A stretch of DNA of 64,000 nt from sequence record MK268344.1. One strand, written 5' to 3'. Below are positions 13,495 to 57,076 of the stretch, piece by piece. The notes under the pieces were generated by a model that searched no databases, was not told the DNA's origin, and saw only the letters and a list, made by a program, of their open reading frames with translations. Each line of letters begins with the position of its first letter. Within the stretch, counting starts at the first letter, position 1. The position numbers were made by a program, and so were the translations under genes.

Positions 13495-14049
13495 ATGAAT
13501 TTTTTACCAACTCTTAATAGCATTATGAGAAAATCGCTATATGATAAATTAGATGCAACTTTATCAATTATCGAAGCATTTGATTTTAGTGTTTTTGAAA
13601 ATCTTGATGAAGAACAATTATCTATTCATGATATTAATATAACAATATCAAAAGAAAATAGATTTATATTTAGTAAGACTTATCGTATTGAAATTGTTTC
13701 TGATGGTAGTGATCATTATTATCTATATGAAAACCCACATAATCTTTACATAAATGGTAGATATGAACCAATGTTTGTTGATGTGTCATTTAAAGCCCTA
13801 ATCAATGATTGTAAATTAAAACGTATTGAAATGCGAATACAAGGCCAGTCATACAACAATGACAGATTGTTGAATATTTTGGTTGGGAAAGAAAAAATCT
13901 TGATTAACAGCGAATGGTTTGATATAATGGGTCTCGAAGAGAAGATTTTTCAAATGAGTACTGTTAAGTCACCTGAACCATTTGACTTACCATCCATTGG
14001 GGAAATGTTCAGAAAACTCCACTTATTCAACGACAGAGGCGAAAAATGA
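13495..14049 (+). CDS. EEEYFQxST-motif paralogue
   Basis: LEEKIFQMSTVK. Confidence 0.7.
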   Translation: MNFLPTLNSIMRKSLYDKLDATLSIIEAFDFSVFENLDEEQLSIHDINITISKENRFIFSKTYRIEIVSDGSDHYYLYENPHNLYINGRYEPMFVDVSFKALINDCKLKRIEMRIQGQSYNNDRLLNILVGKEKILINSEWFDIMGLEEKIFQMSTVKSPEPFDLPSIGEMFRKLHLFNDRGEK

Positions 14050-14423
14050 TTTGGATTGCATTGATAGTTGTAGTATCTCTATATTTTCTATATTTTGTAC
14101 TACGCAGTTGTGCAGTACTACAAGGTCTTTATTTCAAAACTGGCACTAAATCAGTTGTAGGTTTAATTGGTGACTATCCAAAAACCTGTATTGGTGTCGT
14201 AATCTTCTTTGTACTAATCAACATCTATGATTACAAGAAACACGTAGTCAGTATGTATGATTGTTCAGTACAGAAGACTATTCACAAAGCAGCAAATAGT
14301 GAATACTCATGGTATAATGGAGAGTGCAACTTCCAAGATAAGAATGGTGTATTCATTAACATGAAGCGTGTACGTGGTCTACCCGAAGGTACTGCTGACC
14401 ACGCAGATGATGATTTACAATAA
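14046..14423 (+). CDS. Membrane protein
   Basis: Two hydrophobic helices, ATGA coupling. Confidence 0.7.
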   Translation: MIWIALIVVVSLYFLYFVLRSCAVLQGLYFKTGTKSVVGLIGDYPKTCIGVVIFFVLINIYDYKKHVVSMYDCSVQKTIHKAANSEYSWYNGECNFQDKNGVFINMKRVRGLPEGTADHADDDLQ

Positions 14424-14432
14424 GGTAAAAAT

Positions 14433-14927
14433 ATGTTTGAATGGGATCAAGAGAAGTACTTTGATCCTACCGAGGACGGTTTAACTCACATCAACACATA
14501 TAGTAAAGGAAGAACCGTATTGGGGAGGATGCTATCAAATTTTGCATACTCCCCTTTTGTGTATGAACCATACGGGAAATTTGATTCCGTTGAGGGCTTC
14601 TGGTACTGGTACTTAACTGGACAGAAGCATGAAGACTTGAGAACAGTAAGTGGTTCATATGCTAAAGTACTTGGTAGGAAATATGAAAGTGATAGAGTAG
14701 AACATTCTCTCACTGAAGAAACAATTGAAGTCATGCAAGGTGCAATAATTAGTAAGATTGCACAGAATAAAGAACTACAGAAAATGTTAATTAGTAGTAC
14801 TTTACCTCTATGTCATTATTATTTCATGTATGGACGTGTCATAAATCCCTTTGATGGTCATGATTGGTTCTCCGAGACATTGGAGGATATTCGGACGGTA
14901 TTGAAACTTGGGACAAATGGTGTTTAA
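14433..14927 (+). CDS. NADAR-family protein (T4 gp30.3-like)
   Basis: LSNFAYSPF...FDSVEGFW resembles T4 30.3 LSNFAQWPF...FGGLEGF as I recall it. Confidence 0.65.
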   Translation: MFEWDQEKYFDPTEDGLTHINTYSKGRTVLGRMLSNFAYSPFVYEPYGKFDSVEGFWYWYLTGQKHEDLRTVSGSYAKVLGRKYESDRVEHSLTEETIEVMQGAIISKIAQNKELQKMLISSTLPLCHYYFMYGRVINPFDGHDWFSETLEDIRTVLKLGTNGV

Positions 14928-14938
14928 TGTGATATAAT
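14907..14938 (+). promoter_or_regulatory. CTTGGGACAAA-class promoter (copy 1)
   Basis: CTTGGGACAAA-N10-TGTGATATAAT. Confidence 0.8.
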
Positions 14939-14943
14939 ATGTG

Positions 14944-17610: not shown

Positions 17611-17807
17611 AAAAAGAACCTGTTTACGAACAGAAACTTTATTGTCCTCAATGTAAGAATGTTTACCAGTACAGAACGAATGAATGCGAAGTCTGTGGCT
17701 TCGCTATTCACAATCATTTTTGGGTCGATGAACGGTTTAAGGAATTACGCTCTTTCCGTGCTATCCGCTCAATGGAAAAATACATGGAAAATATGAGGAA
17801 CGAATGA
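17607..17807 (+). CDS. Small Zn-ribbon protein
   Basis: CPQC...CEVC. Confidence 0.65.
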   Translation: MKKEPVYEQKLYCPQCKNVYQYRTNECEVCGFAIHNHFWVDERFKELRSFRAIRSMEKYMENMRNE

Positions 17808-18184
17808 ATATTACAGAACAAATGAAAATCATCCCATTCTTAAGTACTCGTATCTTTATTGAGGATGGTTATGAAAAAACTGTGAGTATTATCGCTTACC
17901 GTGATAGTGAAGATTCACCATATAGTAATATTATTGCATGTCCACCATGCAATGGTATTGGTGCAATGGTAACTCTATTCACTAATGGTTGCATGGTTAA
18001 GTTAGATATGAATAAACTAATAATCACTGTTAACATTCCCGGTGATGAACCATCTATTGCAACCTTTCCTCTTAATGTTGATGAGGGTGGTTTTTTCCAA
18101 GAAACAGTACTTCATGATTTCAAGGATATTACTTTCGAGCATCTAAAGGCTGTTCGTGATGTAGTGGAACTATATAATGACTAA
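17804..18184 (+). CDS. EEEYFQxST-motif paralogue
   Basis: DEGGFFQETVLHDF. Confidence 0.7.
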   Translation: MNITEQMKIIPFLSTRIFIEDGYEKTVSIIAYRDSEDSPYSNIIACPPCNGIGAMVTLFTNGCMVKLDMNKLIITVNIPGDEPSIATFPLNVDEGGFFQETVLHDFKDITFEHLKAVRDVVELYND

Positions 18185-18613: not shown

Positions 18614-18645
18614 CTTGGGACAAACTAGGATTTATGTGATATAAT
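18614..18645 (+). promoter_or_regulatory. CTTGGGACAAA-class promoter (copy 2)
   Basis: Exact motif, directly before tRNA-Ser. Confidence 0.8.
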
Positions 18646-20941: not shown

Positions 20942-20973
20942 CTTGGGACAAATCACTTATAATGTGATATAAT
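20942..20973 (+). promoter_or_regulatory. CTTGGGACAAA-class promoter (copy 3)
   Basis: Exact motif before tRNA-Thr. Confidence 0.8.
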
Positions 20974-21229: not shown

Positions 21230-21342
21230 GCGTTGTTTAGTTTTTTCTCCTTTTTAGGCTAAACAACATTCCCTTTAATTTTGTTATTGACTTTTGCCCG
21301 AACATGTGTTACAATATGAACGGGCTTTCTTTTGGAGAAAAA

Positions 21343-21528
21343 ATGTCAAATATGATGAAGAAGTGGTTTGTAGGATTCTGTATTGCTCTTTACGTCCTAC
21401 TAGTAATGTTTAATGTAGTACCCGGAATGATATCGGCTCCCGATACTTTCCAAAACGTGCTCGGAATTGTAATCTTTGTATTCAGTTTTCCAGCAATCTA
21501 TGTAATTATCAAGAAGGTATTCAAATAA
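21343..21528 (+). CDS. Small 2-TM membrane protein (SPFH partner)
   Basis: ATG after GGAG; TAATG coupling to the SPFH gene. Confidence 0.7.
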   Translation: MSNMMKKWFVGFCIALYVLLVMFNVVPGMISAPDTFQNVLGIVIFVFSFPAIYVIIKKVFK

Positions 21529-22367
21529 TGTTCAAGAAAATTCTACTAGCAGTTGGTCTTATGGTTGGTGCACTAACCCTATCAGGTTGTGACCGTGTTG
21601 AACCGGGTTTTGTTGGTATTAAAGTCAACAAACTAGGTGATGATAAAGGTGTTGGTGAAGTTGTTGGTGTAGGTCGTGTATGGACTGGTATTAATACTGA
21701 CCTATACGTTTTCCCAATGTTCAAGCAAATGAAATCATATGATGATGTGTTTACATTCCAAATGCGTGACGGTACTACAATCGGTTATCATATTGGCGTT
21801 TCTTATAAAGTTGACCCAACTAAAGTTAAAACTGTTTTCCAAACGTATCGTAAAGGTGTAGATGATATTACTGATACTGACCTACGTATGAAAATCAGTG
21901 ATTCACTAACTAGCCTAGCTAGTAAAATGACTACTGACCAATTCATCGATGGTGGTAAAGCATCACTACTAGACAATGCACTAAAAGATCTACAAGCTGA
22001 AATGAATCCAATTGGTATTCAAATCATGAGTCTATCTTGGATTGGTAAACCAGAGTATCCACCAAGTGTTATTGATTCTATCAATGCTAAAGTAACGGCT
22101 AACCAAAAAACTCTACAACGTCAGCAAGAAGTACAGCAACGTGAAGCGGAAGCTAACATGAAACGTGCCGAAGCAGCAGGTGAAGCAGATGCTAAACTAC
22201 GTCTAGCACAAGCGGAAGCTAAGAGTATCGAAATTCTAGGTGAAGCACTACGCCGCAACCCAGATGTTAAAGAACTTAAAGCTATTGAGAAGTGGGATGG
22301 TAAACTACCCGGTATGATGGGTTCCCAAGCTGTACCATTTGTACAAATTCCAAATAATGCTAATTAA
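21528..22367 (+). CDS. SPFH/band-7 family lipoprotein
   Basis: Lipobox LTLSGC, VEPGFVGIKV, AEA-rich coiled coil, IEKWDGKLP. Confidence 0.9.
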   Translation: MFKKILLAVGLMVGALTLSGCDRVEPGFVGIKVNKLGDDKGVGEVVGVGRVWTGINTDLYVFPMFKQMKSYDDVFTFQMRDGTTIGYHIGVSYKVDPTKVKTVFQTYRKGVDDITDTDLRMKISDSLTSLASKMTTDQFIDGGKASLLDNALKDLQAEMNPIGIQIMSLSWIGKPEYPPSVIDSINAKVTANQKTLQRQQEVQQREAEANMKRAEAAGEADAKLRLAQAEAKSIEILGEALRRNPDVKELKAIEKWDGKLPGMMGSQAVPFVQIPNNAN

Positions 22368-22433
22368 CAATTTGTGAATTCCTAAGCTCCTTCAGATGAA
22401 GGGGCTTTTATTTTACCCATAGGAAATAACCTT

Positions 22434-22826
22434 ATGTTTGATGTGGAAAATTTTATTAGTTCTCTTGAAGTTTTTGCTAGTCAAGAATCAATCAATTATA
22501 CTATGATGAAAAAGAGTGTTGGTTGTACTAAACATCTAGAAATTGATTCTTTCTCATCTAAAATGAAAATACGAATTAAAAAAAATGATCCAGAACTAGA
22601 GTATGAGTTGATCTATGACCCAGATATGGATTGGATTATATATGGATGTAGAAAAACACGATATGTTTCCATTTATGGGGATTCAAGAAATATAGTATGT
22701 AGAAAATATTTTAAACAGATTAGTACTAAACATTATGAATATGTTACACCTGCGATCATAGAACTAATCAAACAACTTCATGAGCATATTATTATTTCAA
22801 TTAAACTTAGGGAAAGAAATGGATAA
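22434..22826 (+). CDS. Hypothetical protein
   Basis: 130-aa AT-rich ORF. Confidence 0.6.
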   Translation: MFDVENFISSLEVFASQESINYTMMKKSVGCTKHLEIDSFSSKMKIRIKKNDPELEYELIYDPDMDWIIYGCRKTRYVSIYGDSRNIVCRKYFKQISTKHYEYVTPAIIELIKQLHEHIIISIKLRERNG

Positions 22827-23244
22827 ATTTAAACAATATACAATACAACTATATAATAACTGTACAGAATTAATAGCCGATGTTCATCGCGGTCGTCGTA
22901 AATTTAGAAATATTTACGAATCAACACAAAAAGTGATCTTTGAAGACTTAGCTATGCGTACAGTGCAATTATCATCTAACGAGTTAGTACTTAAGTTTGA
23001 AAATATCTCAATATATTTCAGGGATAATATCATTCAGTTTTGTCTTAATCAGATTTCTTATGTTCATGATGTAATATACATACCGAACAACAAAGATTTT
23101 TCTTTTTATGAAATTTATAGCGAATGTGATCTATTTCAGTTAAGTACAGTAGTGGATACTAAATTAATCCGTTTCGAAGATATTGATTTATTGAATCGCA
23201 TCAAATCATATTTTGAATACCGCCATTTGGAAAATAATATTTGA
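22819..23244 (+). CDS. EEEYFQxST-motif paralogue
   Basis: SECDLFQLSTVVD. Confidence 0.7.
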   Translation: MDKFKQYTIQLYNNCTELIADVHRGRRKFRNIYESTQKVIFEDLAMRTVQLSSNELVLKFENISIYFRDNIIQFCLNQISYVHDVIYIPNNKDFSFYEIYSECDLFQLSTVVDTKLIRFEDIDLLNRIKSYFEYRHLENNI

Positions 23245-23289
23245 TTATACCCGGCACATATGCTATAGTGTATAAAAAAGGAGATATGT

Positions 23290-23748
23290 ATGAATATGCA
23301 AGAATACATGAAGTTGTTCACTGACGTTGATTTTTCAACGTGGACAATATTGAGAAATCGCAATAATAATATCATTTGGCTAAATCAGAATATTGATGGT
23401 TTAAAAATTCATATCAACCTCGCTAATGAACCGAGTGTCCGTTTTTATCAATTTAAAAAAGATGAAAAGAATGTCAGTACTGAACGTATGACAATAACAA
23501 ACAACTATATCAGATTTGAGGAAATGGTTGTTCACTATAATGAAGAAACTAAAAAACACACTAGTGAAGAAAACATTATTGCATACGTACCTAAGTACAA
23601 AGAAATATTTTCAGAAGAACAATTCTTCCAAGAAAGTCTAGTTAATGATTATGGTGATTTGGGATATAACGATATTCTAGTATTATCAGAACTAAGAGAC
23701 CGTGCGATTGATATTGCTAAGAAGGAATTAGAAAATGTCGGAGCATGA
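23290..23748 (+). CDS. EEEYFQxST-motif paralogue
   Basis: SEEQFFQESLVND. Confidence 0.7.
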   Translation: MNMQEYMKLFTDVDFSTWTILRNRNNNIIWLNQNIDGLKIHINLANEPSVRFYQFKKDEKNVSTERMTITNNYIRFEEMVVHYNEETKKHTSEENIIAYVPKYKEIFSEEQFFQESLVNDYGDLGYNDILVLSELRDRAIDIAKKELENVGA

Positions 23749-24283
23749 TATTATCAAAATGATTCCTAGTACTGCTAAAACTCTTCTCCGTAATATTTCA
23801 TTCAAGAAGATGAAACGTACTACCCGTCAAAAAGGTCGCTATTATTATCGTGGGAAACTATATGATTGTTTACGTGTAATTATTGATGTAAATGAACACA
23901 CGATTAAGTTTGCTCGTGAGTTGAAAGTTGGTTATGGTATGCGTAATGAATCATTGACATATGATTATAAGAATGGTACAGTACTAAAATACTTTCATGA
24001 ACCATCAGCCTATGATGCTGATTATAATAAAGTACAATACCCTTTTATTGATGATGAAGCCATGCATTTTATGGAAAGCACAATGCAAGATAAGTACTTT
24101 CCAACGGTAGAAGACTTTGCTAAAATAAAAGAACTTAAAGAACATTTTTATGAGGATGCAAAAGCATGGGAGAACGAACTTTACCAGAAAGAACAGGAAC
24201 GACGAAAGAAGAGTTGGAACGAATGGCAAGCCAAATTAAAAGTAATCCAGAAGAAATCATCGGGAAAGCATACATCCTTCTAA
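23735..24283 (+). CDS. EEEYFQxST-motif paralogue with charged tail
   Basis: DDEAMHFMESTMQD. Confidence 0.65.
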   Translation: MSEHDIIKMIPSTAKTLLRNISFKKMKRTTRQKGRYYYRGKLYDCLRVIIDVNEHTIKFARELKVGYGMRNESLTYDYKNGTVLKYFHEPSAYDADYNKVQYPFIDDEAMHFMESTMQDKYFPTVEDFAKIKELKEHFYEDAKAWENELYQKEQERRKKSWNEWQAKLKVIQKKSSGKHTSF

Positions 24284-24612
24284 GGAAAGATTTGGAGATG
24301 CCTGAAGGTAAACTTGCTGCTCAAGCTGGACACGCTATGGATCTGCTATGGGATTATATGCGTACTGACGCCAGTGATGAAGAAATTGAAGAGTTTGATA
24401 AGTGGCATGATTCAGGTCGTCGTAAAATTATCTTGCGTTTAAAAGACGAAAGTGATATGATTAAGATTAATAATAAACTCATCGAAGAAGGGTTTAAACC
24501 GCATCTAATCTACGACTACGGAATTAACTTCTTTGATGGTTTGACATTCACTGGTTTAGTACTACTCAGTACTAAAGAAGTTAAAACATTAAAACGTGTG
24601 AGGGTTTACTAA
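24223..24612 (+). CDS. Peptidyl-tRNA hydrolase, PTH2 family
   Basis: ILLRKDLEMPEGKLAAQAGHA, W...GRRKIILR, IYDYG. Confidence 0.85.
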   Translation: MASQIKSNPEEIIGKAYILLRKDLEMPEGKLAAQAGHAMDLLWDYMRTDASDEEIEEFDKWHDSGRRKIILRLKDESDMIKINNKLIEEGFKPHLIYDYGINFFDGLTFTGLVLLSTKEVKTLKRVRVY

Positions 24613-24986
24613 TGAGACTTGAACGTCATGGCGGATTTTTTATTGGGTTTCTTTTAGCAATTTGGGTAGTTGGTAACATTACACATTATGCAATTGATGT
24701 ATTAGCACCAAATGAGGAATTGTTTAAAAAAGCTAAACGTGAAAACAAACAGTTTGAAACATTACGTAATGATAGTGGTTTGTACGCTGAAGTACTAGAG
24801 CTAATCAAAACATGTAATGTTAATGTTGAAGAAAAGACTGGTAATAAATTTTATATTTGTCCTAATGGTGAAAAGATTACCCAAATTAATTGGGAACGCG
24901 ATCAAAAGACACGTGTCGGTGTAGTAACACGCTATTATGATAACAAAGGTAATTTACGTTTAATATACGGTCATCCAGACGATTAA
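24612..24986 (+). CDS. Membrane-anchored hypothetical protein
   Basis: N-terminal TM helix, TAATG coupling. Confidence 0.65.
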   Translation: MRLERHGGFFIGFLLAIWVVGNITHYAIDVLAPNEELFKKAKRENKQFETLRNDSGLYAEVLELIKTCNVNVEEKTGNKFYICPNGEKITQINWERDQKTRVGVVTRYYDNKGNLRLIYGHPDD

Positions 24987-24995
24987 GGATAAAAT

Positions 24996-25289
24996 ATGTT
25001 TAAAGAAATTAAACACAACACAAAAGAACACATTAGTGAAAATTTACTATATCATCCAGCAGAAGTTATGGTCAAAACCACATCTGGTTATAAAGTACTA
25101 CCACTATATGTACGGGAAAGCAATGGACATGTTTACGCAAAGAATGGTCAATTTTACATTGCACTTATGAAGCAAAGCATCACAAGCAACTCAAAAATTA
25201 CATGGGTTGAGCTAGATGGGCTTGACGAAGTGTATGAAAAATGTTATCTTGTATATAAATCTGACAAAGGCGAAGCCGTTAAGGAGTGA
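24996..25289 (+). CDS. Hypothetical protein
   Basis: AAGGA RBS. Confidence 0.7.
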   Translation: MFKEIKHNTKEHISENLLYHPAEVMVKTTSGYKVLPLYVRESNGHVYAKNGQFYIALMKQSITSNSKITWVELDGLDEVYEKCYLVYKSDKGEAVKE

Positions 25290-25480
25290 GTATGAAAAAG
25301 ATTCAAAGTACTGAAAAGTACACACTAAATTGCAATGAGCTTGATGAATTACTTCGTGAAAAACACTTTACAGACCTAGCACCAAATGCTAAAATAACCA
25401 TCGAACCTGAATATGATTCGTATTATGATGCTAATGTTTTCCGTGGACTTAAAATCACAGTAGTAACCGAAGGAGAGTAA
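25286..25480 (+). CDS. Hypothetical protein
   Basis: AAGGAG RBS. Confidence 0.65.
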   Translation: MSMKKIQSTEKYTLNCNELDELLREKHFTDLAPNAKITIEPEYDSYYDANVFRGLKITVVTEGE

Positions 25481-25482
25481 TA

Positions 25483-25734
25483 GTGGCTAATGTTGTTCGT
25501 GCTCGTAAAATGATAAGTGGTGATGATCTTCGTATTCTTAACAATTATCGTGCCATCTTTCAGAAACTTTGTGCTGGTGTTCATATGACAATTGTTACTG
25601 ATACGGTACAAGAACCTGAAGCAGTGTTTGGTAACTATGCTAAAGTGTTCAATATGTATATCAAGCGTGGACAACTTGACCTTATTACAATTGCTGAAGC
25701 ACCAGACGATTTAGAAAACTTTTTCTTCCTGTGA
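25483..25734 (+). CDS. Hypothetical protein
   Basis: GTG start after GGAG. Confidence 0.65.
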   Translation: MANVVRARKMISGDDLRILNNYRAIFQKLCAGVHMTIVTDTVQEPEAVFGNYAKVFNMYIKRGQLDLITIAEAPDDLENFFFL

Positions 25735-25796
25735 GGATGTTATGAAAGAACCGTTAGACCGTGATGACGATTTCCTTGATGAACGTTATGGAGAAG

Positions 25797-26288
25797 ATGA
25801 TGAGTAAATTACTAACCTTACCGGAAGTTCTGAAAGAATTTAATAATTACTTAGATTCTAATCCACCATTTGAAAACCATTCAAATGGTAACATTTCTGC
25901 TTTTTTGAAAAATAGTTCCATTTTTAAAGGGTATGATGATATAGTTGAAGTGTTTGGATGTGACAGATATATGCGTATTAAATTACGTAATCCAGAAATT
26001 CTAGTAGAATATCAATTAGATATGATGCCTTGGAGTAATGGATTTAATTTTAAATGTTGGCACGATGGGTCTGATAGTGAATGTCCGTGGACACCAAAAA
26101 CCAATCCAAATCGTTCGTCCTTCTATATTGAAACGGAAGAAGAATACTTTCAATTGAGTACCGTAAAAAATCTCAAAGATTTAACATTGGAAACCATTAC
26201 TTCAGTTAAAAAGTTACAAGATCGTTTATTTGAATATTACAACATTGTACCTGATACCACAATTTATGGAGACAGTAATGGAAAATAA
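25797..26288 (+). CDS. EEEYFQxST-motif paralogue
   Basis: TEEEYFQLSTVKNL. Confidence 0.75.
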   Translation: MMSKLLTLPEVLKEFNNYLDSNPPFENHSNGNISAFLKNSSIFKGYDDIVEVFGCDRYMRIKLRNPEILVEYQLDMMPWSNGFNFKCWHDGSDSECPWTPKTNPNRSSFYIETEEEYFQLSTVKNLKDLTLETITSVKKLQDRLFEYYNIVPDTTIYGDSNGK

Positions 26289-26661
26289 ACCGGAGTGGTT
26301 AAAAAAGGCACTGGAATATATTGATAGTTTAAGTCCAGAAGAACTTTATGAAAGTGTATATGGATTTAAAAAAGATGACTTTGAACAGTACTGTACGGAT
26401 AAAACCTATGAGTTTGAAGCACAGTACGTGATAGATGCCATGAATAAACTTGGTGTTAAAGAAATTAATATTTATAATGGTGATATTCAGCCACCAAGTA
26501 ACATGTTTTTCCATTACCTACGTGAGTTTGCTGAAAGTGGAACTGATTTGGAGTTCTGGAATGGATGGGGTGCTGATACGCTAGATGTTCCCGGCTTCAA
26601 CCTACGTTATCTTTGGGTCAATGGACAGGGTACAGAGCATTTCTTTCAGATAATTGAATAG
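26278..26661 (+). CDS. Hypothetical protein
   Basis: ATG after GGAG; WVNGQGT motif. Confidence 0.7.
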   Translation: MENKPEWLKKALEYIDSLSPEELYESVYGFKKDDFEQYCTDKTYEFEAQYVIDAMNKLGVKEINIYNGDIQPPSNMFFHYLREFAESGTDLEFWNGWGADTLDVPGFNLRYLWVNGQGTEHFFQIIE

Positions 26662-26669
26662 GGGTTGAT

Positions 26670-27029
26670 ATGGAACTACACGATGAACATGTTATCGCTT
26701 ATAGTATTGAAAAATTAAAACAAATGTTTGGTGGTAAAACCCCATATGAACACAAACAGGATTCACTCTTTCGTCAATCTAAAGCAGAGAAAGAATTTTG
26801 GGATACCGAACCGTCTGTAGGTGATCGTGTTCATTTCCGTAGCAAAAGTGTAGTGAACGATAGTGTATTTGAGGGATATGGCGAAGTACTAAGTATTATT
26901 GTAAAAGACTATTTCACTCATTATGCACTTTATAGAATTAAAGCCGATCATGGTATGAACTATGAAGCGTACTTAAATGATCCAAATGACGTAGAACCAA
27001 AGGAGTTTATTAAACATGCCGAAAAATAA
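26670..27029 (+). CDS. Hypothetical protein (SH3-like C-terminal half)
   Basis: VGDRVHF pattern. Confidence 0.65.
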   Translation: MELHDEHVIAYSIEKLKQMFGGKTPYEHKQDSLFRQSKAEKEFWDTEPSVGDRVHFRSKSVVNDSVFEGYGEVLSIIVKDYFTHYALYRIKADHGMNYEAYLNDPNDVEPKEFIKHAEK

Positions 27030-27225
27030 TGTATATTTTGTAGGGTACAACACTCTTAATAAAGAAGTGTTTAAAGAAACCATGAATACATATCGTGCAG
27101 ATACCGAAGATGCCATGCAAAAAGAATTTGGTTCAGATTGGAAAGAAGTACGTCCGTATCTAATTATTACAAAATGCAAGGTGGTAGTTGATGAGCAAAG
27201 TGAAGATCAAGGGAACAGTAACTGA
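27016..27225 (+). CDS. Hypothetical protein
   Basis: AAGGAG RBS. Confidence 0.65.
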   Translation: MPKNNVYFVGYNTLNKEVFKETMNTYRADTEDAMQKEFGSDWKEVRPYLIITKCKVVVDEQSEDQGNSN

Positions 27226-27523: not shown

Positions 27524-27543
27524 TGCCGCCATGCGGCATTTTT

Positions 27544-27575
27544 CTTGGGACAAAATCAGGTTCATGTGATATAAT
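27544..27575 (+). promoter_or_regulatory. CTTGGGACAAA-class promoter (copy 4)
   Basis: Exact motif before tRNA-Arg. Confidence 0.8.
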
Positions 27576-27583
27576 ATAATTAT

Positions 27584-27660
<77 letters not shown>

Positions 27661-27674
27661 CATAAGGAATAACA

Positions 27675-29026: not shown

Positions 29027-29035
29027 AGGAATTCT

Positions 29036-29944: not shown

Positions 29945-29963
29945 ACCCAACAGTGGTATCATT

Positions 29964-43256: not shown

Positions 43257-43754
43257 ATGAAAGAACTAATTAAACAAAAATGTATGTTCGAGTTATTAAG
43301 TACTGAAATCAATTCGGGTATAGTACTTGATGAACCAGAATGTTGGCTTCGAGATTACTATGACGAACCATTTACCGTTCCCATCGATTCATATATGGAT
43401 GATTATTGTACTACAATATTTCCAGATGAAGTCCATTTATTCACAAATAATTTTCATTTTATACATTACCCAAGTACTAAAGAAATCCGCATATATCTTA
43501 TGTTCCATTTCAATACTAGTGAATATGGTGTTCCACCTGAATATTATAGAGACGAATTACATGACAACATGGAATCATGTATTGCAATTAACTCGAACGG
43601 GTTTTGGTTCAGCGATGAGAATTACACATACAGTACTGAAGAAGAGATATTCCAGTTGTCCTGTACTGAATTGGGGTTTTACATTGATATAGTAGAACGT
43701 GCTAAAGAATTCATTTATGCGGAGATACAAAACCGTGAATGTAGAGAAGTATAG
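43257..43754 (+). CDS. EEEYFQxST-motif paralogue
   Basis: TEEEIFQLSCTEL. Confidence 0.7.
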   Translation: MKELIKQKCMFELLSTEINSGIVLDEPECWLRDYYDEPFTVPIDSYMDDYCTTIFPDEVHLFTNNFHFIHYPSTKEIRIYLMFHFNTSEYGVPPEYYRDELHDNMESCIAINSNGFWFSDENYTYSTEEEIFQLSCTELGFYIDIVERAKEFIYAEIQNRECREV

Positions 43755-44142
43755 AGATTTTTTAAAATACATGATTCATGCAGAAGATTTGAAGATTTCA
43801 GTACTAGATGGTATTATGCACATTAACGTAGGAACACTACGTACTAATAGTATTGAAATAAACAACAATTATAATACAATTTCTATGTATGATTTAGAAT
43901 GGGTAAGGGAAGAATCAAAAGAATTTACTAACAGTTCCACATCGATGTTAAGGGCTGTATTAAAAAATGCATCACCTCCTAAATTGGAATTCTATATTCC
44001 AATATCACAGGAAGATGAGTTTCAACAAAGTACTGCACGATTGGGATATATCCTACCGTATTCATTAGTACCATATGTTGATGAACTAATAAAACGTGTT
44101 CATGATATAGTTGATGATTTTTATATTAAAGGAAGAGATTAA
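43699..44142 (+). CDS. EEEYFQxST-motif paralogue (start uncertain)
   Basis: SQEDEFQQSTARL. Confidence 0.65.
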   Translation: MLKNSFMRRYKTVNVEKYRDFLKYMIHAEDLKISVLDGIMHINVGTLRTNSIEINNNYNTISMYDLEWVREESKEFTNSSTSMLRAVLKNASPPKLEFYIPISQEDEFQQSTARLGYILPYSLVPYVDELIKRVHDIVDDFYIKGRD

Positions 44143-47392: not shown

Positions 47393-47884
47393 ATGACAAC
47401 TGAAAAATTTGTTCAGTACTTTTTGAATATCATCAATGTAAATAAAACATTTGATTTAGATACTTGGTTAGATACTTCTGGCTATCCAAAACTGTATGAA
47501 GGTGGTGTAATCAAAAGTACTTTACCCTTGAAAAAAGGAGTATTACCACAATCCCTGTTCATTGCTGGCAAAAGAAATTTATTCATGGGTATTATGGATT
47601 ATGATGATGCACATGATCATGATGTTGATTTAAATTATGATTTCCAAACCCAAGTACTAACAATTAATTTCACTGATATTACAACTCATAATGATGCATA
47701 TGCAGAAGATGAGAACATGAATGACTATACTCTTAATGTGAAACTATTCGATGATGACGGTGAATTCTTTCAAGAGAATACAGTAACTGATTTACCATTT
47801 GAATTTGAAGTACAAAAGAAAATGAAAGTATTCTTTGATGCTATGTATGATGGTTTCTGCAATAAGAAGGTATTAATAAAATGA
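47393..47884 (+). CDS. EEEYFQxST-motif paralogue
   Basis: DDGEFFQENTVTDL. Confidence 0.7.
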   Translation: MTTEKFVQYFLNIINVNKTFDLDTWLDTSGYPKLYEGGVIKSTLPLKKGVLPQSLFIAGKRNLFMGIMDYDDAHDHDVDLNYDFQTQVLTINFTDITTHNDAYAEDENMNDYTLNVKLFDDDGEFFQENTVTDLPFEFEVQKKMKVFFDAMYDGFCNKKVLIK

Positions 47885-48363
47885 ATAATAAAATATATGT
47901 CATGCCTGATAAAGTTCTTGAATTAATTTGGGAAAAGGTTGAGTACTATAAGGCATTGGAAATACTTTCATATGACCAAGTTGTTTTTAACAATCGTGGT
48001 GTGAATAATGAGATTTATACCAGTAAGAAGTTTCAAGACTTAGAATGTTTCCAGAATCCAAAAACAGGTGAATATAGCATTACAATACTAAGTAATGCAC
48101 TAATGGAACTGTACTTCTTTGCAAATCAACTAACAGAAGAACCTGATAATGGTTATTATCTAGAAATAGAGTATAGATATAATACAAATTGGGCACGAAT
48201 GGCTACACACATTTATGAGTCAGAAGAAGAGTACTTTATGCAAAGTACTGTAGAAAATTTACAACTAAGTATCGACCGTAATTTTAAAGTTGCTAGCTTT
48301 ATGGCACAACTTAAAGAGTTGATCAGATTGAGGGCTATTGAACATGGAAAATCAACATCGTAA
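47881..48363 (+). CDS. EEEYFQxST-motif paralogue
   Basis: SEEEYFMQSTVENL. Confidence 0.75.
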   Translation: MNNKIYVMPDKVLELIWEKVEYYKALEILSYDQVVFNNRGVNNEIYTSKKFQDLECFQNPKTGEYSITILSNALMELYFFANQLTEEPDNGYYLEIEYRYNTNWARMATHIYESEEEYFMQSTVENLQLSIDRNFKVASFMAQLKELIRLRAIEHGKSTS

Positions 48364-49292: not shown

Positions 49293-49778
49293 ATGAAATT
49301 TGATCCAGAAAGGTTATTACTGTTATTGCAAGTTCTATCTATCCCAACAAATACAGGTATGGTTAGTTTCAATCCAGTAAAGCCAATGAATCTTAAAAAT
49401 GGAGATTCAGTTAAATACCCTTGTATGTTATTTGGTATCAACAAATCTCATAATTTTACTTGTACTGACATGTATTGCATGTTGATTGTAAAAAATGATT
49501 CAACATCAGATTATTGTTGTACTTGGTGGTTTACTAACGATAAGTTCATGTTATCCATTATTGATAATGATGATAACGAAGATCCAGAAATGACAAGAAA
49601 TATTTCTGATACTGTGGCTATGGGTAATTTCCATAAATCAGAAGAAGAACATTTTCAAAAAGATTGTTTATCAGGAACTCCTATTACTTGGGAACTTGAG
49701 GTGGCAGTGAAAGAATGTCTTTCTAATCTAAAATCTTTTTATAATGCAGCATTAGCCGAATGGAATGGTGTACTATGA
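49293..49778 (+). CDS. EEEYFQxST-motif paralogue
   Basis: SEEEHFQKDCLSG. Confidence 0.65.
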   Translation: MKFDPERLLLLLQVLSIPTNTGMVSFNPVKPMNLKNGDSVKYPCMLFGINKSHNFTCTDMYCMLIVKNDSTSDYCCTWWFTNDKFMLSIIDNDDNEDPEMTRNISDTVAMGNFHKSEEEHFQKDCLSGTPITWELEVAVKECLSNLKSFYNAALAEWNGVL

Positions 49779-50221
49779 ACACAACATTAATAAGACCTGA
49801 AGTACTGAAACATGTAAAGGGAAGATATAAGGGAATTTCCAAAAATGATTTAAATTCATTTCCAGAAACCGAATTACTTGATAGTGAACAATTACTTTCT
49901 TACGGGGATCAAAATCACGGTTATTACTTTGACTTAGGTATTGATATGGGTAGTAACGAGGAAATTGGTTTTGAAGGTTCAATCACTCAATTTGAATTCA
50001 AACTGGTTGAGTACACGCAAATTGACACTAAACCAAATTCGTTTAAGATTGATTTAACTTTATTTGATGGGGCATTAACCGAAGAAGTCTTTTTTCAATT
50101 CAGTACTATAGAAGATTTTTATGGCTTGACATTCGAACAGCTTCGGGTTATCATAGAAATACGGGATGAAATTAAAAATCGCATTCCTCATTGGGGTATT
50201 AATCCTAAAGAAAAACTTTAA
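49775..50221 (+). CDS. EEEYFQxST-motif paralogue
   Basis: TEEVFFQFSTIEDF. Confidence 0.75.
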   Translation: MNTTLIRPEVLKHVKGRYKGISKNDLNSFPETELLDSEQLLSYGDQNHGYYFDLGIDMGSNEEIGFEGSITQFEFKLVEYTQIDTKPNSFKIDLTLFDGALTEEVFFQFSTIEDFYGLTFEQLRVIIEIRDEIKNRIPHWGINPKEKL

Positions 50222-50588: not shown

Positions 50589-51401
50589 ATGAGAAAAGAC
50601 ATATTACAACAAAAAGAATTAATTCTTCAATTAATAGAAAAGAAAGCCCCTAAAAATGAGATTTGTAGAATTTTAAATTGTAAAACTACTACATTGGATT
50701 CATATCTAAAGAAAATGAATATTGAATATTCTGGTAACAAATCCAGAAAAGGGTTACAGAGAACTGAAAATTATAAAAATGTTGAAGAGTACCTATTCAA
50801 TGGTAGTTCGATTCAATCTCATAAATTGAAATTGAAATTAATACGAGAAAATATATTTGAACATAAATGTCATAGATGTGGATTGCGTGAATGGGAAGGT
50901 GTAGAAATTCCATTAGAATTAGATCATATCGATGGTCAACATTTTAATAATGAACTATCAAACCTTAGATTATTATGTCCAAATTGTCATGCGTTAACTG
51001 ATACATACAGGTCAAAAAACCGAAGAACTGTTAGAACTAAAAAAGAAATAGAATCATTGGCAGAAGAAGTGTTTACGCGATTTGCTGATGATATAGAGAA
51101 CAATTCTATTGAGAAAGAATCAAAAGAAAAGAAACGAAAGATTACTAATATATGTAAAACATGTAATAAATCATATGAAAAATGTGGTAACATGAAAGGT
51201 AAGTATTTTTGCAGTGATGAATGTTATCGAAAATCATTACAAAAATTTGATATTACGTCAGAAGAATTAAGTAAATTAGTTTGGGAAATGCCTACTACTA
51301 AAATAGCAGAAATATATAATGTTAGTGATGTTGCAATTTCTAAACGTTGTAAAAAATACGGTATTAAGAAACCACCACGTGGTTATTGGATGAAAAAATG
51401 A
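50589..51401 (+). CDS. Free-standing HNH homing endonuclease with HTH domains
   Basis: CHRCG...LELDHIDG...NNELSNLRLLCPNCH; C-terminal CKTC/CSDEC and HTH. Confidence 0.9.
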   Translation: MRKDILQQKELILQLIEKKAPKNEICRILNCKTTTLDSYLKKMNIEYSGNKSRKGLQRTENYKNVEEYLFNGSSIQSHKLKLKLIRENIFEHKCHRCGLREWEGVEIPLELDHIDGQHFNNELSNLRLLCPNCHALTDTYRSKNRRTVRTKKEIESLAEEVFTRFADDIENNSIEKESKEKKRKITNICKTCNKSYEKCGNMKGKYFCSDECYRKSLQKFDITSEELSKLVWEMPTTKIAEIYNVSDVAISKRCKKYGIKKPPRGYWMKK

Positions 51402-51448: not shown

Positions 51449-51871
51449 ATGAAATTCAGTGAAAAAGAAATTGAATTCGTGCGGAAGTTGATTAAAACTA
51501 TAGATAGTAAACCAAACTATGAAATATCACGAAGTGGTCATCGTTATAGTTTTTGGACATGTACTGGTGATCAAACAAATAGAAAAAATTGTCATAATAT
51601 AACATTATACAGCGAAGATGATTTATGGGGAGCTAATTTCGATATATTCACAGATCGGATAGAAATAATTGTAGACTATGAAGATCATAGATGGGATCAC
51701 ACATTATATACATCTGAATTCAGTACTGTATCAGAAGAAGAATTATTCCAACAAAGCATTATTCAAGATTTTTCTATGTTTGATGAATATCCTGATGTAT
51801 TAGAACGCTTATTAAAATACTCGATTGAAGTGAGGTCTAATCTTGAAAAAGCCAATACAATACTCCAATGA
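51449..51871 (+). CDS. EEEYFQxST-motif paralogue
   Basis: SEEELFQQSIIQDF. Confidence 0.75.
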   Translation: MKFSEKEIEFVRKLIKTIDSKPNYEISRSGHRYSFWTCTGDQTNRKNCHNITLYSEDDLWGANFDIFTDRIEIIVDYEDHRWDHTLYTSEFSTVSEEELFQQSIIQDFSMFDEYPDVLERLLKYSIEVRSNLEKANTILQ

Positions 51872-52358
51872 ATTAGATAAAAAGCAACGCGAGGTAATAC
51901 TTCGGCAGTACTTTGATAATGCAATAAAAACTGCTGAGTACATGATTAGTACTGGAACTGATGTAATGAATAATAATGAACAAACAACTTTAGAAGAAGC
52001 AAAGTTGTGGTGTTTATTACATAAGAATCATTATGCGATAACATTTTATGATAATGACATTGGAAGTCAAGATATAAGAAAAGCTACTAACTTTGCTATT
52101 GAGTTCCCAGAAGATGAAGTATTTGAACGTAGTGCTGCTGTTATTGATGTATTTCCTGACCGTATTCTTTTATGTAACGAACTATGTGATGATGCACCAT
52201 TGTCAGAAATTGACATTTCGTTCAATGAACTTGATGAAGGGTATCATTTTCAGATGGAAGCAACGCTTGAAATATTTCCATTTACATTTGAACAATTCAA
52301 GACGTTATTTGGTATAGCAAAAAAACTAAAACAGCCATTGACAAAATTGGAATCCTAG
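51843..52358 (+). CDS. EEEYFQxST-motif paralogue (start uncertain)
   Basis: DEGYHFQMEATLEI. Confidence 0.65.
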   Translation: MKKPIQYSNELDKKQREVILRQYFDNAIKTAEYMISTGTDVMNNNEQTTLEEAKLWCLLHKNHYAITFYDNDIGSQDIRKATNFAIEFPEDEVFERSAAVIDVFPDRILLCNELCDDAPLSEIDISFNELDEGYHFQMEATLEIFPFTFEQFKTLFGIAKKLKQPLTKLES

Positions 52359-54125: not shown

Positions 54126-54368
54126 ATGAAAACCGATAAAGCTATTGAAAAGATGCGTCGTAATAAGCGTAATTGGACTATCCCTAAACTGAAAGTAATC
54201 GCCGCACGTTGTGGTATTTCGTGCGTGTCGAATGGTAGTACTCATCACGTTTTCAGGTTAGAGGGTGTTGTAGAACATTTGTCAATTCCATTCAATGGTA
54301 AGGACATTCACCCTGATTATATAACTAAATTTCTACGCCTAATAGATAAGGCAACAGGAGAGAAGTAA
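54126..54368 (+). CDS. HicA-family RNase (orphan)
   Basis: 80 aa basic; NGSTHHVFR...LSIPF.GKDIHPDYI dsRBD-type HicA pattern. Confidence 0.75.
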   Translation: MKTDKAIEKMRRNKRNWTIPKLKVIAARCGISCVSNGSTHHVFRLEGVVEHLSIPFNGKDIHPDYITKFLRLIDKATGEK

Positions 54369-55603
54369 TGATTTCTGAATACATGGCAATGTTTTCAAAA
54401 ATGATGAATGACTATCCGTGGATGATGGGTCTTTATTCATTATATGGAATGGCAGTAATAACGTATCTAACAAAATTCATTCCTAAGATTTGGAACTTTA
54501 TCTACAGTCAAAGCATTACAACATTAGAATTGAATAATGCTGGTTGGTCTGGAAATGAAGCTCACTTTTTGGCATTTATGGAATGGTACTTAAAAAGTCC
54601 ATATGCTAAGTGGTCACGCTATCTTTCACTAGATGGTAAATTTCACAGATGGGAAGATGATGAACCTACGAATAAAACTTATGTAATTGGTGCTGGTTAT
54701 GGCACACACTTCTTCTTTTACAAGAAGCGTCTATTTTGGTTCTCTAAAGGAACATTACAAAGTTCGGGTTCGGAGAAAGAAAAACAAAATATTGTAATTA
54801 AAACACTAGGTCGCACACAGAAACCATTAGTAGATTTAGTCGCTGATTTTGCAGTTAAACCTAAAGAAACTGATATTAGTATCTTTAACTATAAAGATGA
54901 TTGGGAACAGATTTCATCAGTAACTAAACGTCCACTATCATCAGTAATTCTACGTAAAGATATTAAAGATGAATTGGTTGGGAATCTTGAGTACTTCTAT
55001 GCTAATCGTGAATGGTACGTGTCACGTGGTCTAGCATATAAACAAACTTATATCCTACACGGTTTGCCCGGTACAGGTAAAAGTAGTACTATCAAAGCAC
55101 TAGCATCACACTTCAAAAAGAATATCTGTATCATTGATATTACTACAATGAGTAACATGGCATTCGAAAAAGCAATGGCATCCGTTCCTCGTGGTTCAAT
55201 CGTTCTAATCGAAGACTTTGATTCGTGTCGTGCATTACATTCACGTGAAGATAGTGAAGATAATACAAATGGTATGGCTGAATTGGTAGAAGTACTATCA
55301 CTATCTAAAGTACTAAATGTTCTTGATGGTGTAGTTAGTCTAGATGATACTGTGGTATTTTTAACTACCAACCACCTAGATAAGATTGACGCTGCAATGA
55401 CACGTAAAGGAAGGGTTGATTATTGCATCGAGATTCCACACCTAGAAGATGCAGAAGTGAAAGAATATATTCATCTTATGTATCCAGATGAAGAAATTCC
55501 ACAAAAAACATTTGACACCATCGCAGGTTGTGATATACAATCTCTTTACCTCGAACATAAAGAAGATTTCAACAGCTTCATTGGAAGTCTAAAGGAGAAA
55601 TAA
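54368..55603 (+). CDS. BCS1-like AAA+ ATPase
   Basis: N-terminal TM helix, GAGYGTHFF BCS1_N pattern, Walker A GLPGTGKS, IEDFD, LNVLDG, TTNH, RKGRVD. Confidence 0.85.
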   Translation: MISEYMAMFSKMMNDYPWMMGLYSLYGMAVITYLTKFIPKIWNFIYSQSITTLELNNAGWSGNEAHFLAFMEWYLKSPYAKWSRYLSLDGKFHRWEDDEPTNKTYVIGAGYGTHFFFYKKRLFWFSKGTLQSSGSEKEKQNIVIKTLGRTQKPLVDLVADFAVKPKETDISIFNYKDDWEQISSVTKRPLSSVILRKDIKDELVGNLEYFYANREWYVSRGLAYKQTYILHGLPGTGKSSTIKALASHFKKNICIIDITTMSNMAFEKAMASVPRGSIVLIEDFDSCRALHSREDSEDNTNGMAELVEVLSLSKVLNVLDGVVSLDDTVVFLTTNHLDKIDAAMTRKGRVDYCIEIPHLEDAEVKEYIHLMYPDEEIPQKTFDTIAGCDIQSLYLEHKEDFNSFIGSLKEK

Positions 55604-56013
55604 TGGCTGAACTTAAACTCAAGTTGCGTGAGCGTTGGGTTAATGTTAGCGATAATACGGTAATTCAAAGTCTCATCACTGAGGAAACTATTCACATTGA
55701 TGATGATTTAGATTTTGAAGAAATGGCACATTATTATATGTGCCTCCGTGTTGGGTCGAGTATTGTAGATGGTGTCCGTCATGAAGTTTCGGTTTATGAC
55801 GGTTCATTGACAAAAGAAGAAATGTTTGATTTCATTCTAAACAATACAGTAACATTATATCCTGATGGATCTACGTGGACGAAACATAATGAAGACGGTA
55901 CTGAAGAAAAAGTAGTACTGAAATATAATGTATCCATTAATGGCTGTAGTATGAGTGGTTATGATTTAGAAGATGCTATTAATCACTACGTTAAGGAGAT
56001 TCAAAATAAATGA
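55603..56013 (+). CDS. Hypothetical protein
   Basis: AAGGAG RBS. Confidence 0.7.
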   Translation: MAELKLKLRERWVNVSDNTVIQSLITEETIHIDDDLDFEEMAHYYMCLRVGSSIVDGVRHEVSVYDGSLTKEEMFDFILNNTVTLYPDGSTWTKHNEDGTEEKVVLKYNVSINGCSMSGYDLEDAINHYVKEIQNK

Positions 56014-56333
56014 TTTCAGTAATGTGTGTAATTTGTGCTACTATCGTAATTTGTACTTTTATTAAGTACCGCTGCATTTGGAAATGTCAGCAACAAGAAT
56101 ACAGATTATATCGTGAGAAAAACAAGAAATCACCGTTTGTTATTCGTCCACATTTATATAAGCATCCACATGATGCATCTAAACATTATTGGGGTTATGT
56201 AGTATTCAATACTGACACTGACCACCCATATACTGGCATTGATAAAAACAATACATCTTTTACTGTATATCGCGAAAAGGCCGATGCAGATAAGCGTCGT
56301 AAAGAATTGGATGAATTGTATGAATACAATTGA
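56010..56333 (+). CDS. Membrane-anchored hypothetical protein
   Basis: N-terminal hydrophobic helix. Confidence 0.65.
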   Translation: MISVMCVICATIVICTFIKYRCIWKCQQQEYRLYREKNKKSPFVIRPHLYKHPHDASKHYWGYVVFNTDTDHPYTGIDKNNTSFTVYREKADADKRRKELDELYEYN

Positions 56334-56685
56334 TTATAATGATGCCATAAAATTGATGGAGAAATTCATCAATACTTACAAAGTAAAAGGAAAATTAAAA
56401 GGGTATTCTTATTCATTCAGTTCACGTAAGATAGAATTACGAGACAATAGTACTTCTGAATCTGTTATTATATGCAACGATCGTCTGATATATGTCCAAT
56501 CAGTATCAAGATTCAGAACTACATCCTTTAAACGTTACTTATGTGAAGAAGAATGTTTTCAGGATTCTTGTATTGGTGAAGTCGGTTGTGATGAAAAGAT
56601 GGAGTTGCTTATCAAAGAATGTGTTGACGTGTACTACCAAAGTGTGATAAACTCGCTTAACATAGGTGGTTGGGTTGATGAGTGA
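56320..56685 (+). CDS. EEEYFQxST-motif paralogue
   Basis: CEEECFQDSCIGE. Confidence 0.65.
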   Translation: MNTIDYNDAIKLMEKFINTYKVKGKLKGYSYSFSSRKIELRDNSTSESVIICNDRLIYVQSVSRFRTTSFKRYLCEEECFQDSCIGEVGCDEKMELLIKECVDVYYQSVINSLNIGGWVDE

Positions 56686-57076
56686 AAATGTTGTTAATCG
56701 TAATAAACTATTAGAACGAGGTTTAATGTTGATAGTTGGTGCTACTATGTCATTAGAAGATACTGGTAGTACTGGTCAATACCTCGTGAAAATGGGTACA
56801 ATGAAGTTAGTACTATCTAGAAACTTTACAGAGGTTGCTATTTCAAAACACTATGTAACTATTAGATGGATGAGTGAAAGTATTGTATTAAGTCGGGCAA
56901 CATCAGAAGAAGATTATTTTCAGAAGATGTGTCTTGATGATTCGTATTGTGATGAAGAGTACGAAAAAGGTATTAAAGAATTTTTTGATTTATATATGAA
57001 ATCCTTGTATCGCAATTTTGCAATAGGGGGTTTCCTAGAAGGTGCTTATGCAGAAGATATCGAAAACGATCAGTAA
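56678..57076 (+). CDS. EEEYFQxST-motif paralogue
   Basis: SEEDYFQKMCLDD. Confidence 0.65.
   Translation: MSENVVNRNKLLERGLMLIVGATMSLEDTGSTGQYLVKMGTMKLVLSRNFTEVAISKHYVTIRWMSESIVLSRATSEEDYFQKMCLDDSYCDEEYEKGIKEFFDLYMKSLYRNFAIGGFLEGAYAEDIENDQ

Follow-up and report, generated by a model that had tools for sequence, protein, structure and literature searches.

Large paralogous sets that combine one conserved short module with a divergent remainder are known from the F-box and PRANC families of eukaryotes and poxviruses. F-box modules join different recognisable interaction domains and their partner is known. The internal protein (IP) locus of phage T4 is another plastic locus, in which unrelated-looking small proteins share a short constant segment; this capsid targeting sequence is a cleaved N-terminal leader, and at least one member acts in counter-defence. 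Expanded families with many tandem or dispersed copies of one small domain of unknown function have been described in giant phages (PMC7824862, PMC3622015). Here we analyse a window of 64,000 nucleotides from the Salmonella jumbo phage Munch (MK268344.1, 350,103 bp; record positions 248001-312000, + strand). It contains 22 genes for small proteins with a common motif near the C-terminus, and all of the family genes are annotated as 'hypothetical protein'. The window was placed by its positions 22000-30000, which match Munch 270000-278000 at 100% identity. Coordinates refer to the window unless a genome is named.

The 22 genes are most probably paralogues of one undescribed single-domain family of ~120-185 amino acids (aa). 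In the predicted architecture a helix at the N-terminus is followed by an antiparallel five- or six-stranded sheet, a helix carrying the motif and a C-terminal helix. The family differs from the F-box and PRANC sets in that it forms one domain with one predicted fold and shows no fusions among 313 clusters of relatives. In contrast to the T4 internal proteins its constant segment is a predicted helix within the fold, close to the C-terminus, and a particle/lysate proteome contains almost none of the proteins. Compared with the expanded families of other giant phages it has a different predicted fold and has diverged across at least 34 PHROGs families. A preliminary description of the window had read the same genes as an adaptor library, i.e. 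as a modular docking motif attached to unrelated variable domains.

Detection of the family in the window

We ran the strict pattern EE.[YFWLIM]F..[ST].[VILM] on the six-frame translation of the window. On the + strand it matched 10 open reading frames (ORFs) of ~140-200 aa, with the site located 35-84 aa before the C-terminus, as well as one unrelated site in a 273-aa ORF; there was no match on the − strand. A hidden Markov model (HMM) iterated from these seeds converged on 19 + strand ORFs, most of them with E values of 1e-11 to 1e-16 and with 43257-43754 as a weak match. As a control we searched 50 shuffled copies of all 242 ORFs, which gave one match at E<0.01. A broader family profile added three divergent members, 51843-52358 (E 8e-4), 43735-44142 (E 5e-3) and 39965-40471 (E 5e-3), each of which keeps the ..E..FQ.. 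core followed by a helix-like segment. The total for the window is 22 members, 19 robust and three weak, which is the number given in the preliminary description. Its example strings and gene starts were correct, and the significance of the motif against shuffled ORFs held. The members are listed below.

13495-14049, + strand: CPT_Munch_369, 184 aa; divergent motif LEEKIFQMSTVKS; HMM E 9e-14 with the seed profile and 1.9e-6 with the family profile
17804-18184, + strand: CPT_Munch_377, 126 aa; motif DEGGFFQETVLHD; profile match
22819-23244, + strand: CPT_Munch_387, 141 aa; opens a triplet; profile match
23290-23748, + strand: CPT_Munch_388, 152 aa; SEEQFFQESLVND; strict pattern and profile
23735-24283, + strand: CPT_Munch_389, 182 aa; sole basic member, isoelectric point (pI) 9.3; 14-nt overlap with CPT_Munch_388
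25800-26288, + strand: CPT_Munch_395, 162 aa; TEEEYFQLSTVKN; AlphaFold2 model 2 (pLDDT 87.8, pTM 0.83)
27675-28163, + strand: CPT_Munch_401, 162 aa; net charge −20; within the block missing from phage fENko-Kae01
28126-28536, + strand: CPT_Munch_402, 136 aa; within the same block
28523-29026, + strand: CPT_Munch_403, 167 aa; TEEEYFQLSTIHD; long C-terminal tail; within the same block
29489-29944, + strand: CPT_Munch_405, 151 aa; perfect TTGACA-17-TATAAT upstream at 29422-29450; within the same block
39965-40471, + strand: CPT_Munch_432, 168 aa; probable divergent member, EDERFQAELLGE; family profile E 4.8e-3, full-length alignment
41169-41564, + strand: CPT_Munch_435, 131 aa; SEEEYFQMSTVHD; AlphaFold2 model 1 (pLDDT 81.4, pTM 0.75); 32%-identical allele in fENko-Kae01
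43257-43754, + strand: CPT_Munch_443, 165 aa; weaker match, STEEEIFQLSC; net charge −22
43735-44142, + strand: CPT_Munch_444, 135 aa; probable divergent member, QEDEFQQSTARL; family profile E 4.6e-3
47393-47884, + strand: CPT_Munch_454, 163 aa; profile match
47881-48363, + strand: CPT_Munch_455, 160 aa; SEEEYFMQSTVEN; 4-nt overlap with CPT_Munch_454; strict pattern and profile
49293-49778, + strand: CPT_Munch_458, 161 aa; SEEEHFQKDCLS; profile match
49775-50221, + strand: CPT_Munch_459, 148 aa; TEEVFFQFSTIED; strict pattern and profile
51449-51871, + strand: CPT_Munch_462, 140 aa; fENko-Kae01 orthologue only 88% identical (genomes ~98%)
51843-52358, + strand: CPT_Munch_463, 171 aa; probable divergent member, DEGYHFQMEATLE; family profile E 8e-4
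56320-56685, + strand: CPT_Munch_471, 121 aa; CEEECFQDSCIGE; fENko-Kae01 annotates a 63-aa gene there (ENKO_451)
56678-57076, + strand: CPT_Munch_472, 132 aa; SEEDYFQKMCLDD; CPT_Munch_471 is its nearest paralogue

Over 230 sequences the consensus of the motif is h-x-x-[TS]-E-E-E-[FY]-F-Q-x-S-[TL]-[VI]-x-D-[LF], where F occurs in 95% of the sequences, Q in 84%, S in 85%, D in 71% and the first two E in 88% and 82%. The motif lies ~35-50 aa before the C-terminus of proteins that are 120-185 aa long. The Ser, Thr, Val, Phe, Gln and Glu codons within it vary synonymously among the paralogues. It is therefore the protein that is constrained rather than a DNA or RNA element, and on the same grounds we rejected a DNA-level element inside the motif. 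The members are acidic, with a median pI of 4.7 and net charges between −7 and −22, and the search for hydrophobic or membrane segments found none in them.

The overlapping pairs and triplets that had been described are real. There are seven such sets in the window: 22819/23290/23735, 27675/28126/28523, 43257/43735, 47393/47881, 49293/49775, 51449/51843 and 56320/56678. A shared AT-rich codon style is also present but is not specific to the family: it is that of the genome as a whole (35% GC). The GC content of the window is ~35% throughout and almost all of its genes are on the + strand. Two ORFs that flank the family clusters, 22434-22826 and 57042-57377, match the N-terminal part of the family profile only (E 0.06) and have no motif; they may be decayed or truncated relatives.

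Sequence divergence and predicted fold

Outside the motif the paralogues have little detectable similarity to each other. The best E value among 171 member pairs was 0.005. Single-linkage clustering of the N-terminal parts of 224 sequences at E<0.001 gave 92 clusters, and no two paralogues of the window fell into the same one. When 17 orthologous subfamilies were aligned and compared with hhalign, the N-terminal probabilities were ~1% and the scores equalled those of reversed controls. A held-out N-terminal HMM found no similarity either, though a weak design, with one giant cluster in a single fold of the test, left it uninformative. At the level of sequence the N-terminal parts are thus as dissimilar as had been stated.

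The predicted structures give a different picture. We obtained AlphaFold2 models for members of two subfamilies and judged them by the predicted local distance difference test (pLDDT) and the predicted template modelling score (pTM). Model 1 (41169-41564; pLDDT 81.4, pTM 0.75) has a helix at residues 3-19, strands at 26-30, 33-42, 50-59, 64-73, 81-83 and 87-89, the motif helix at 94-103 and a final helix at 110-128. Model 2 (25800-26288; pLDDT 87.8, pTM 0.83) has a helix at 7-19, strands at 32-37, 47-53, 58-64, 69-76, 81-88 and 105-108, the motif helix at 113-122 and a final helix at 130-146. The order of elements is the same in both models, namely a first helix followed by five or six strands, then the motif helix and finally a C-terminal helix. 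Both models also contain the helix that had been anticipated after the motif.

The independent model of the 41169 protein in the BFVD database agrees with model 1 at a template modelling (TM) score of 0.93. In BFVD both models retrieve the same proteins of GAP32, RaK2, CBB, the Munch group and Yersinia phage fHe-Yen9-03 over their full length, with cross-paralogue matches that reach a probability of 1.00 at TM scores of mostly 0.3-0.65 and identities of 9-20%. Model 2 also matches the BFVD entry of 41169.

Because of the shared predicted fold, the full-length BFVD cross-matches and the lack of fused domains, the portable docking tag of the preliminary description is unsupported. The two models (pTM 0.75 and 0.83), the BFVD matches and the absence of fusions in 313 clusters instead suggest one fold over the full length, which is the outcome that the description itself had set against its modular reading. 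What stood of its account is the near-invariant segment in many copies, with a remainder diverged past detection; what did not stand is the tag on unrelated domains, as the dissimilar N-terminal parts share a predicted architecture. From the models the family is one fold, in which the motif is predicted to be an integral helix inside a single compact domain.

A helical wheel gives an indication of how this helix may be placed. The free positions 11 and 15 would lie on one stripe, F9, T/L13 and L/F17 would form a hydrophobic stripe, and E5, Y/F8, S12 and D16 would form a conserved, largely polar stripe. This pattern fits a helix packed on the sheet, and the conserved patch may still be exposed. 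Burial of the motif is suggested here by the helical periodicity of the variable positions.

One alternative is an adaptor or substrate library, in which the conserved helix would dock all paralogues on one partner while each variable sheet binds a host protein of its own. The near-invariance of the polar residues while the remainder drifts speaks for such a library, as does the putative separation of positions 11 and 15 from the E5, Y/F8, S12, D16 stripe. The most concrete candidates for the partner are the ClpA, ClpP and ClpS proteins of the phage itself, in which case the library would deliver host factors or defence proteins to a protease owned by the phage. The phages do encode ClpS (Munch 238454-239005), ClpP (ENKO_123, fENko-Kae01 59417-60094) and ClpA (Munch 153403-155670), and ClpA is ~70% identical in 121Q, PBECO4 and Hallingskeid, phages of the clade in which the family occurs. 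However, shared ancestry accounts for this co-occurrence, which adds no independent evidence; the motif belongs to the predicted fold instead of forming a linear tag, and no fusion with another domain was found; and neither ClpS and SspB nor any other known adaptor came up as similar in the fold searches. We consider an adaptor or substrate library rather unlikely. Its specific form, with the conserved helix as docking surface for phage ClpA/ClpS-ClpP and ~40 paralogues as substrate adaptors or decoys for host or defence proteins, is very unlikely; if true, such a Clp-docking library would be the bacterial-virus counterpart of the F-box or PRANC families.

Searches with the two models against known folds returned nothing significant, neither with Foldseek against the Protein Data Bank (PDB) and the AFDB clusters nor in the ESM Atlas shape search. 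The best VIA-align Z scores were 5.2 and 6.6 for the two models, below the level of 8 from which scores of this tool are regarded as meaningful. Among solved anti-defence and anti-CRISPR inhibitor folds the best match was AcrIF13 with Z 4.0, which is within the noise. One group of weak matches recurred for both models: relatives of the acidic protein p32/gC1qR/MAM33, namely 7te3_A (Z 4.6 and 5.9), 1yqf, 3jv1 and 3qv0. The members could accordingly be seen as p32-like, possibly oligomeric proteins that act as polyanionic decoys, mimicking DNA or RNA, against nucleic-acid-binding host or defence proteins. They share with p32 the order of elements (N-terminal helix, antiparallel sheet, two C-terminal helices), and they are strongly acidic like p32 and known DNA mimics. 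Yet all Z scores in this group (4.3-5.9) are below 8, Foldseek reports E values of at least 0.15 at TM 0.16-0.28, neither 10 nor 138 members gave a Pfam MAM33 match and one member is basic (pI 9.3). The sheet of p32 has seven strands, whereas five or six are predicted for the family. This is a resemblance and not membership, and we regard the decoy explanation as unlikely.

A further candidate came from profile searches. The 80-sequence profile weakly matched the C-terminal LAGLIDADG domain of I-OnuI (E 0.008-0.02) via '..IIPVFQENTLIGVKLEDFEDW..', and degenerate LAGLIDADG homing-endonuclease domains would explain by their mobility both the dispersed copies and their presence or absence; copies are indeed gained and lost between close relatives. 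With a 138-sequence profile, however, the match was gone (no PDB match at E up to 1), the 138 members had no LAGLIDADG match in Pfam and no LAGLIDADG structure occurred among the fold matches. The members also have no glycine-rich LAGLIDADG-type helix with a catalytic acid, are acidic (median pI 4.7) rather than of a DNA-binding type, and neither model has a helix between strands 2 and 3 as in the alpha-beta-beta-alpha-beta-beta-alpha core. We regard a LAGLIDADG origin as close to refuted.

Distribution and size of the family

The closest relatives of Munch, at 98-99% identity, are the Salmonella phages 7t3, SE_PL and PHA46 and the Klebsiella phage fENko-Kae01. The latter infects Klebsiella aerogenes and not Salmonella. 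More distant orthologues of 25800-26288 were detected by tblastn in EJP2, CBB and GAP32 at 32-40% identity. In IMG/VR the exact DNA pattern for EEE[YF]FQxST[VI] was found in 16 stretches on eight contigs (seven of 346-366 kb and one of 174 kb), and the loci of these stretches contain 61 more members. A search of 1.84 billion representative proteins with the 80-member profile gave 313 clusters at E <= 0.001. All of these consist of single-domain proteins, 81-249 aa long, most of the listed matches cover most of the protein and the motif is at a fixed distance from the C-terminus; no domain fusion was found among the 313 clusters, including the longest relatives. We also observed tandem arrays on two metagenomic phage contigs, one with 14 members in 17.6 kb and one with 8 in tandem, and four neighbouring members in 121Q that are similar to one another.

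None of 10 sampled clusters carried an informative name. Neither 10 nor 138 members matched Pfam, the family had no match in NCBIfam, and in PHROGs the members were split over at least 34 families of which none is described. A word-based homologue search with a member returned its own cluster only, and the ESM Atlas feature and structure look-up gave a low-confidence model (pLDDT 0.45) and no lead. Literature searches turned up no paper on the motif strings or the family, neither of which is mentioned in the genome papers PMC3622015, PMC7824862 and PMC5259590. For the CBB genome a total of just 22 paralogous ORFs of any kind was reported (PMC5259590). As judged from these databases, the family is new, in the sense that it is not recognised as a family by Pfam or by PHROGs descriptions.

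For the size of the family in a whole genome we applied the family profile (E<0.01) to five stretches of fENko-Kae01 that together span 1-200 kb and 262-311 kb. A total of 38 ORFs passed. Sixteen of them are in the region syntenic with the window, four are dispersed canonical members at 81.5, 93.3, 114.1 and 114.4 kb, and 18 are genes of 160-212 aa that form an array near the left end (19.8-47.4 kb), with motifs such as TEELYFQYSLLYS. This larger tandem array lies just inside the terminal repeat and its 18 genes have a TEE.[YFL]FQ.S[TL] motif; between 19.7 and 35.3 kb, 11 neighbours of similar size fail the profile. The same array is present in Munch, where record positions 21259-36859 correspond to the fENko-Kae01 stretch 19.7-35.3 kb (98.4% identity, full coverage), and Munch 115182-115589 is the counterpart of the 114-kb member. 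A profile scan of Munch 198-248 kb and 305-346 kb gave no members.

In a profile-profile comparison the left array and the canonical family are connected with 92% probability, across the motif only. Membership of the left array in the canonical fold is therefore likely, but not more than that. Judged from the 98%-identical sister phage there would be about 40 members genome-wide in Munch, and the family would make up roughly 8% of the genes in this clade of 350-kb phages. The count of 22 is hence right for the window and understates the genome.

Selection, turnover and expression

Within the 17 orthologous subfamilies the mean identity was 35% for the N-terminal part, 66% for the 14-residue motif and 40% for the C-terminal part. 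Over the shorter distance between Munch and fENko-Kae01 we computed the ratio of non-synonymous to synonymous differences (pN/pS), which was 0.03 for the motif, 0.19 for the N-terminal part and 0.24 for the C-terminal part. The family as a whole showed a pN/pS of 0.18 compared to 0.14 for 74 neighbouring genes. Because these ratios are low, every copy is a maintained gene with purifying selection on every part, and no positive or ongoing diversifying selection was seen in this comparison.

The set of copies itself differs between the two phages. A ~4-kb block at ~27600-31500 is present in Munch and missing from fENko-Kae01; it contains tRNA-Arg, the members 27675, 28126, 28523 and 29489, several other small genes and three perfect sigma-70 promoters. 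In place of 41169-41564 fENko-Kae01 has a 32%-identical allele, its orthologue of 51449-51871 is 88% identical and at the position of 56320-56685 only a 63-aa gene is annotated.

We scanned both strands of the window for sigma-70 promoters (TTGACA-N16-18-TATAAT with at least 11 of 12 bases). There were 30 sites on the + strand, nine of them perfect (N16/17), and one on the − strand. Markov simulations gave an expectation of 2.8 ± 1.5, so the observed number is ~10 times higher. The sites on the + strand extend over the following span:

1315-62812, + strand: span with 30 near-consensus sigma-70 promoters, e.g. the perfect sites 29422-29450, 30584-30612, 30983-31011 and 37250-37278

From its promoters the whole window looks like an early region driven by the host RNA polymerase. 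In CBB, RpoD-like promoters concentrate upstream of CBB_390-546, mostly short hypothetical proteins, and the authors proposed this as an early, host-takeover region (PMC5259590). The CBB orthologue of 25800-26288 is located near 282 kb, and synteny with the peptidyl-tRNA hydrolase gene CBB_392 would place it inside this early region.

A second promoter-like element, GGGACA-N17-TATAAT with an upstream TG, is repeated at 14910-14938, 18617-18645, 20945-20973 and 27547-27575. In three of the four cases it directly precedes a tRNA gene (Ser 18654, Thr 21020, Arg 27584).

For fENko-Kae01, liquid chromatography-tandem mass spectrometry (LC-MS/MS) of an ultrafiltered lysate detected 220 of 578 phage proteins (PMC11218385); the sample is a lysate and does not represent pure virions. 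In the annotation only one of the 38 family ORFs, ENKO_077, is flagged as 'identified'. This bears on the possibility that the members are virion-packaged internal proteins with a shared packaging or targeting signal, which would be injected with the DNA like the T4 internal proteins. The constant short segment, the variable remainder and the hyperplastic locus do resemble the T4 IP genes. But besides the single member flagged in the lysate, the constant segment of the family is a predicted helix within the protein, close to the C-terminus, where that of T4 is a cleaved leader at the N-terminus; and the genes are behind sigma-70-type promoters rather than among late genes. Packaging is highly improbable.

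ClpA of fENko-Kae01 was detected in the same LC-MS/MS data, and so was the fENko-Kae01 orthologue of an AAA-type ATPase that Munch encodes near the end of the family region. This gene is annotated as 'mitochondrial chaperone' (BCS1-like) and is located at 54368-55603, ~0.7 kb upstream of the last two members.

Neighbouring genes

Twelve annotated tRNA genes (Ser, Thr, Arg, Met, Ser, Pro, Asn, Asp, Lys, Glu, Gly and Leu) lie among the family genes at 18654-50523. The tRNA set of fENko-Kae01 differs in this region, with an extra Tyr and no Asn, Asp, Arg, Gly or Leu annotated. Two genes annotated as peptidyl-tRNA hydrolase (21528-22367 and 24166-24612) are also interspersed with the family genes. 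The second of these, CPT_Munch_390, overlaps the preceding member 23735-24283 by 118 nt; its annotated start is probably too far upstream, because fENko-Kae01 annotates a shorter gene there (ENKO_393).

Beside tRNA-Leu, Munch has an HNH nuclease gene at 50589-51401 where fENko-Kae01 has only ~400 bp, and this presence/absence fits a homing-endonuclease insertion. Another large paralogous array is located outside the window on the − strand (record 331600-346239), a run of ~12 genes of ~380 aa that are all annotated as 'DNA condensation protein'. Finally, about 10 public sequencing runs with assemblies of 5-6 Mb, the size of a bacterial isolate, contain 22800-29000 almost entirely (0.96-1.00 of sampled words), which suggests that isolate cultures often carry the jumbo phage along with them.

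Discussion

The reading that we prefer is a lineage-specific expansion of a single-fold family whose members act as early host-takeover or counter-defence binders. The role is taken from context and analogy, and we put the probability of this joint reading at roughly 0.55. The family would have grown by repeated, mostly tandem duplication in RaK2/GAP32/121Q-like jumbo phages and relatives. The motif would be an N-capped helix within the fold and the sole segment under strong constraint rather than a detachable tag, while the sheet and the two other helices would have drifted past sequence recognition. Transcription would be early and by the host RNA polymerase, and the products would work in the cytoplasm as a set of proteins that bind or inhibit host factors or defence proteins. 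Each paralogue would show its own surface on a common scaffold with the conserved helix as structural keystone, and this helix may also bear the conserved polar stripe (E5, Y/F8, S12, D16) for a use common to all members.

Several observations weigh against this reading. Model 2 and the BFVD entry of 41169 agree at a TM score of only 0.35/0.41, and both AlphaFold2 alignments mix paralogues, which could pull the subfamilies toward one topology. Because the profile-profile comparison finds nothing, the homology of the N-terminal parts is argued solely from predicted structure. The short-term pN/pS has no arms-race signature. Furthermore the near-invariant polar residues exceed the usual need of a structural helix and point to a shared functional site. 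As to early expression, no RNA run containing the phage was found among the public runs, and the contigs gave flat assembler depth only.

In practical terms, hundreds of 'hypothetical proteins' would receive an annotation from one profile in RaK2/121Q/GAP32-like phages, a group under consideration for phage therapy. The contrast between a near-frozen 14-residue helix and an unrecognisable remainder makes the family a useful case for how far a fold can drift, and it adds an unusually large and diverged member to the expanded small-protein families that are known from giant phages. A high density of host-type promoters, acidity, purifying selection on each copy, and copies that are gained, lost or swapped for another allele between phages with different hosts are traits of the host-takeover or counter-defence type, and the family is therefore a defined, testable set of candidates for such genes.

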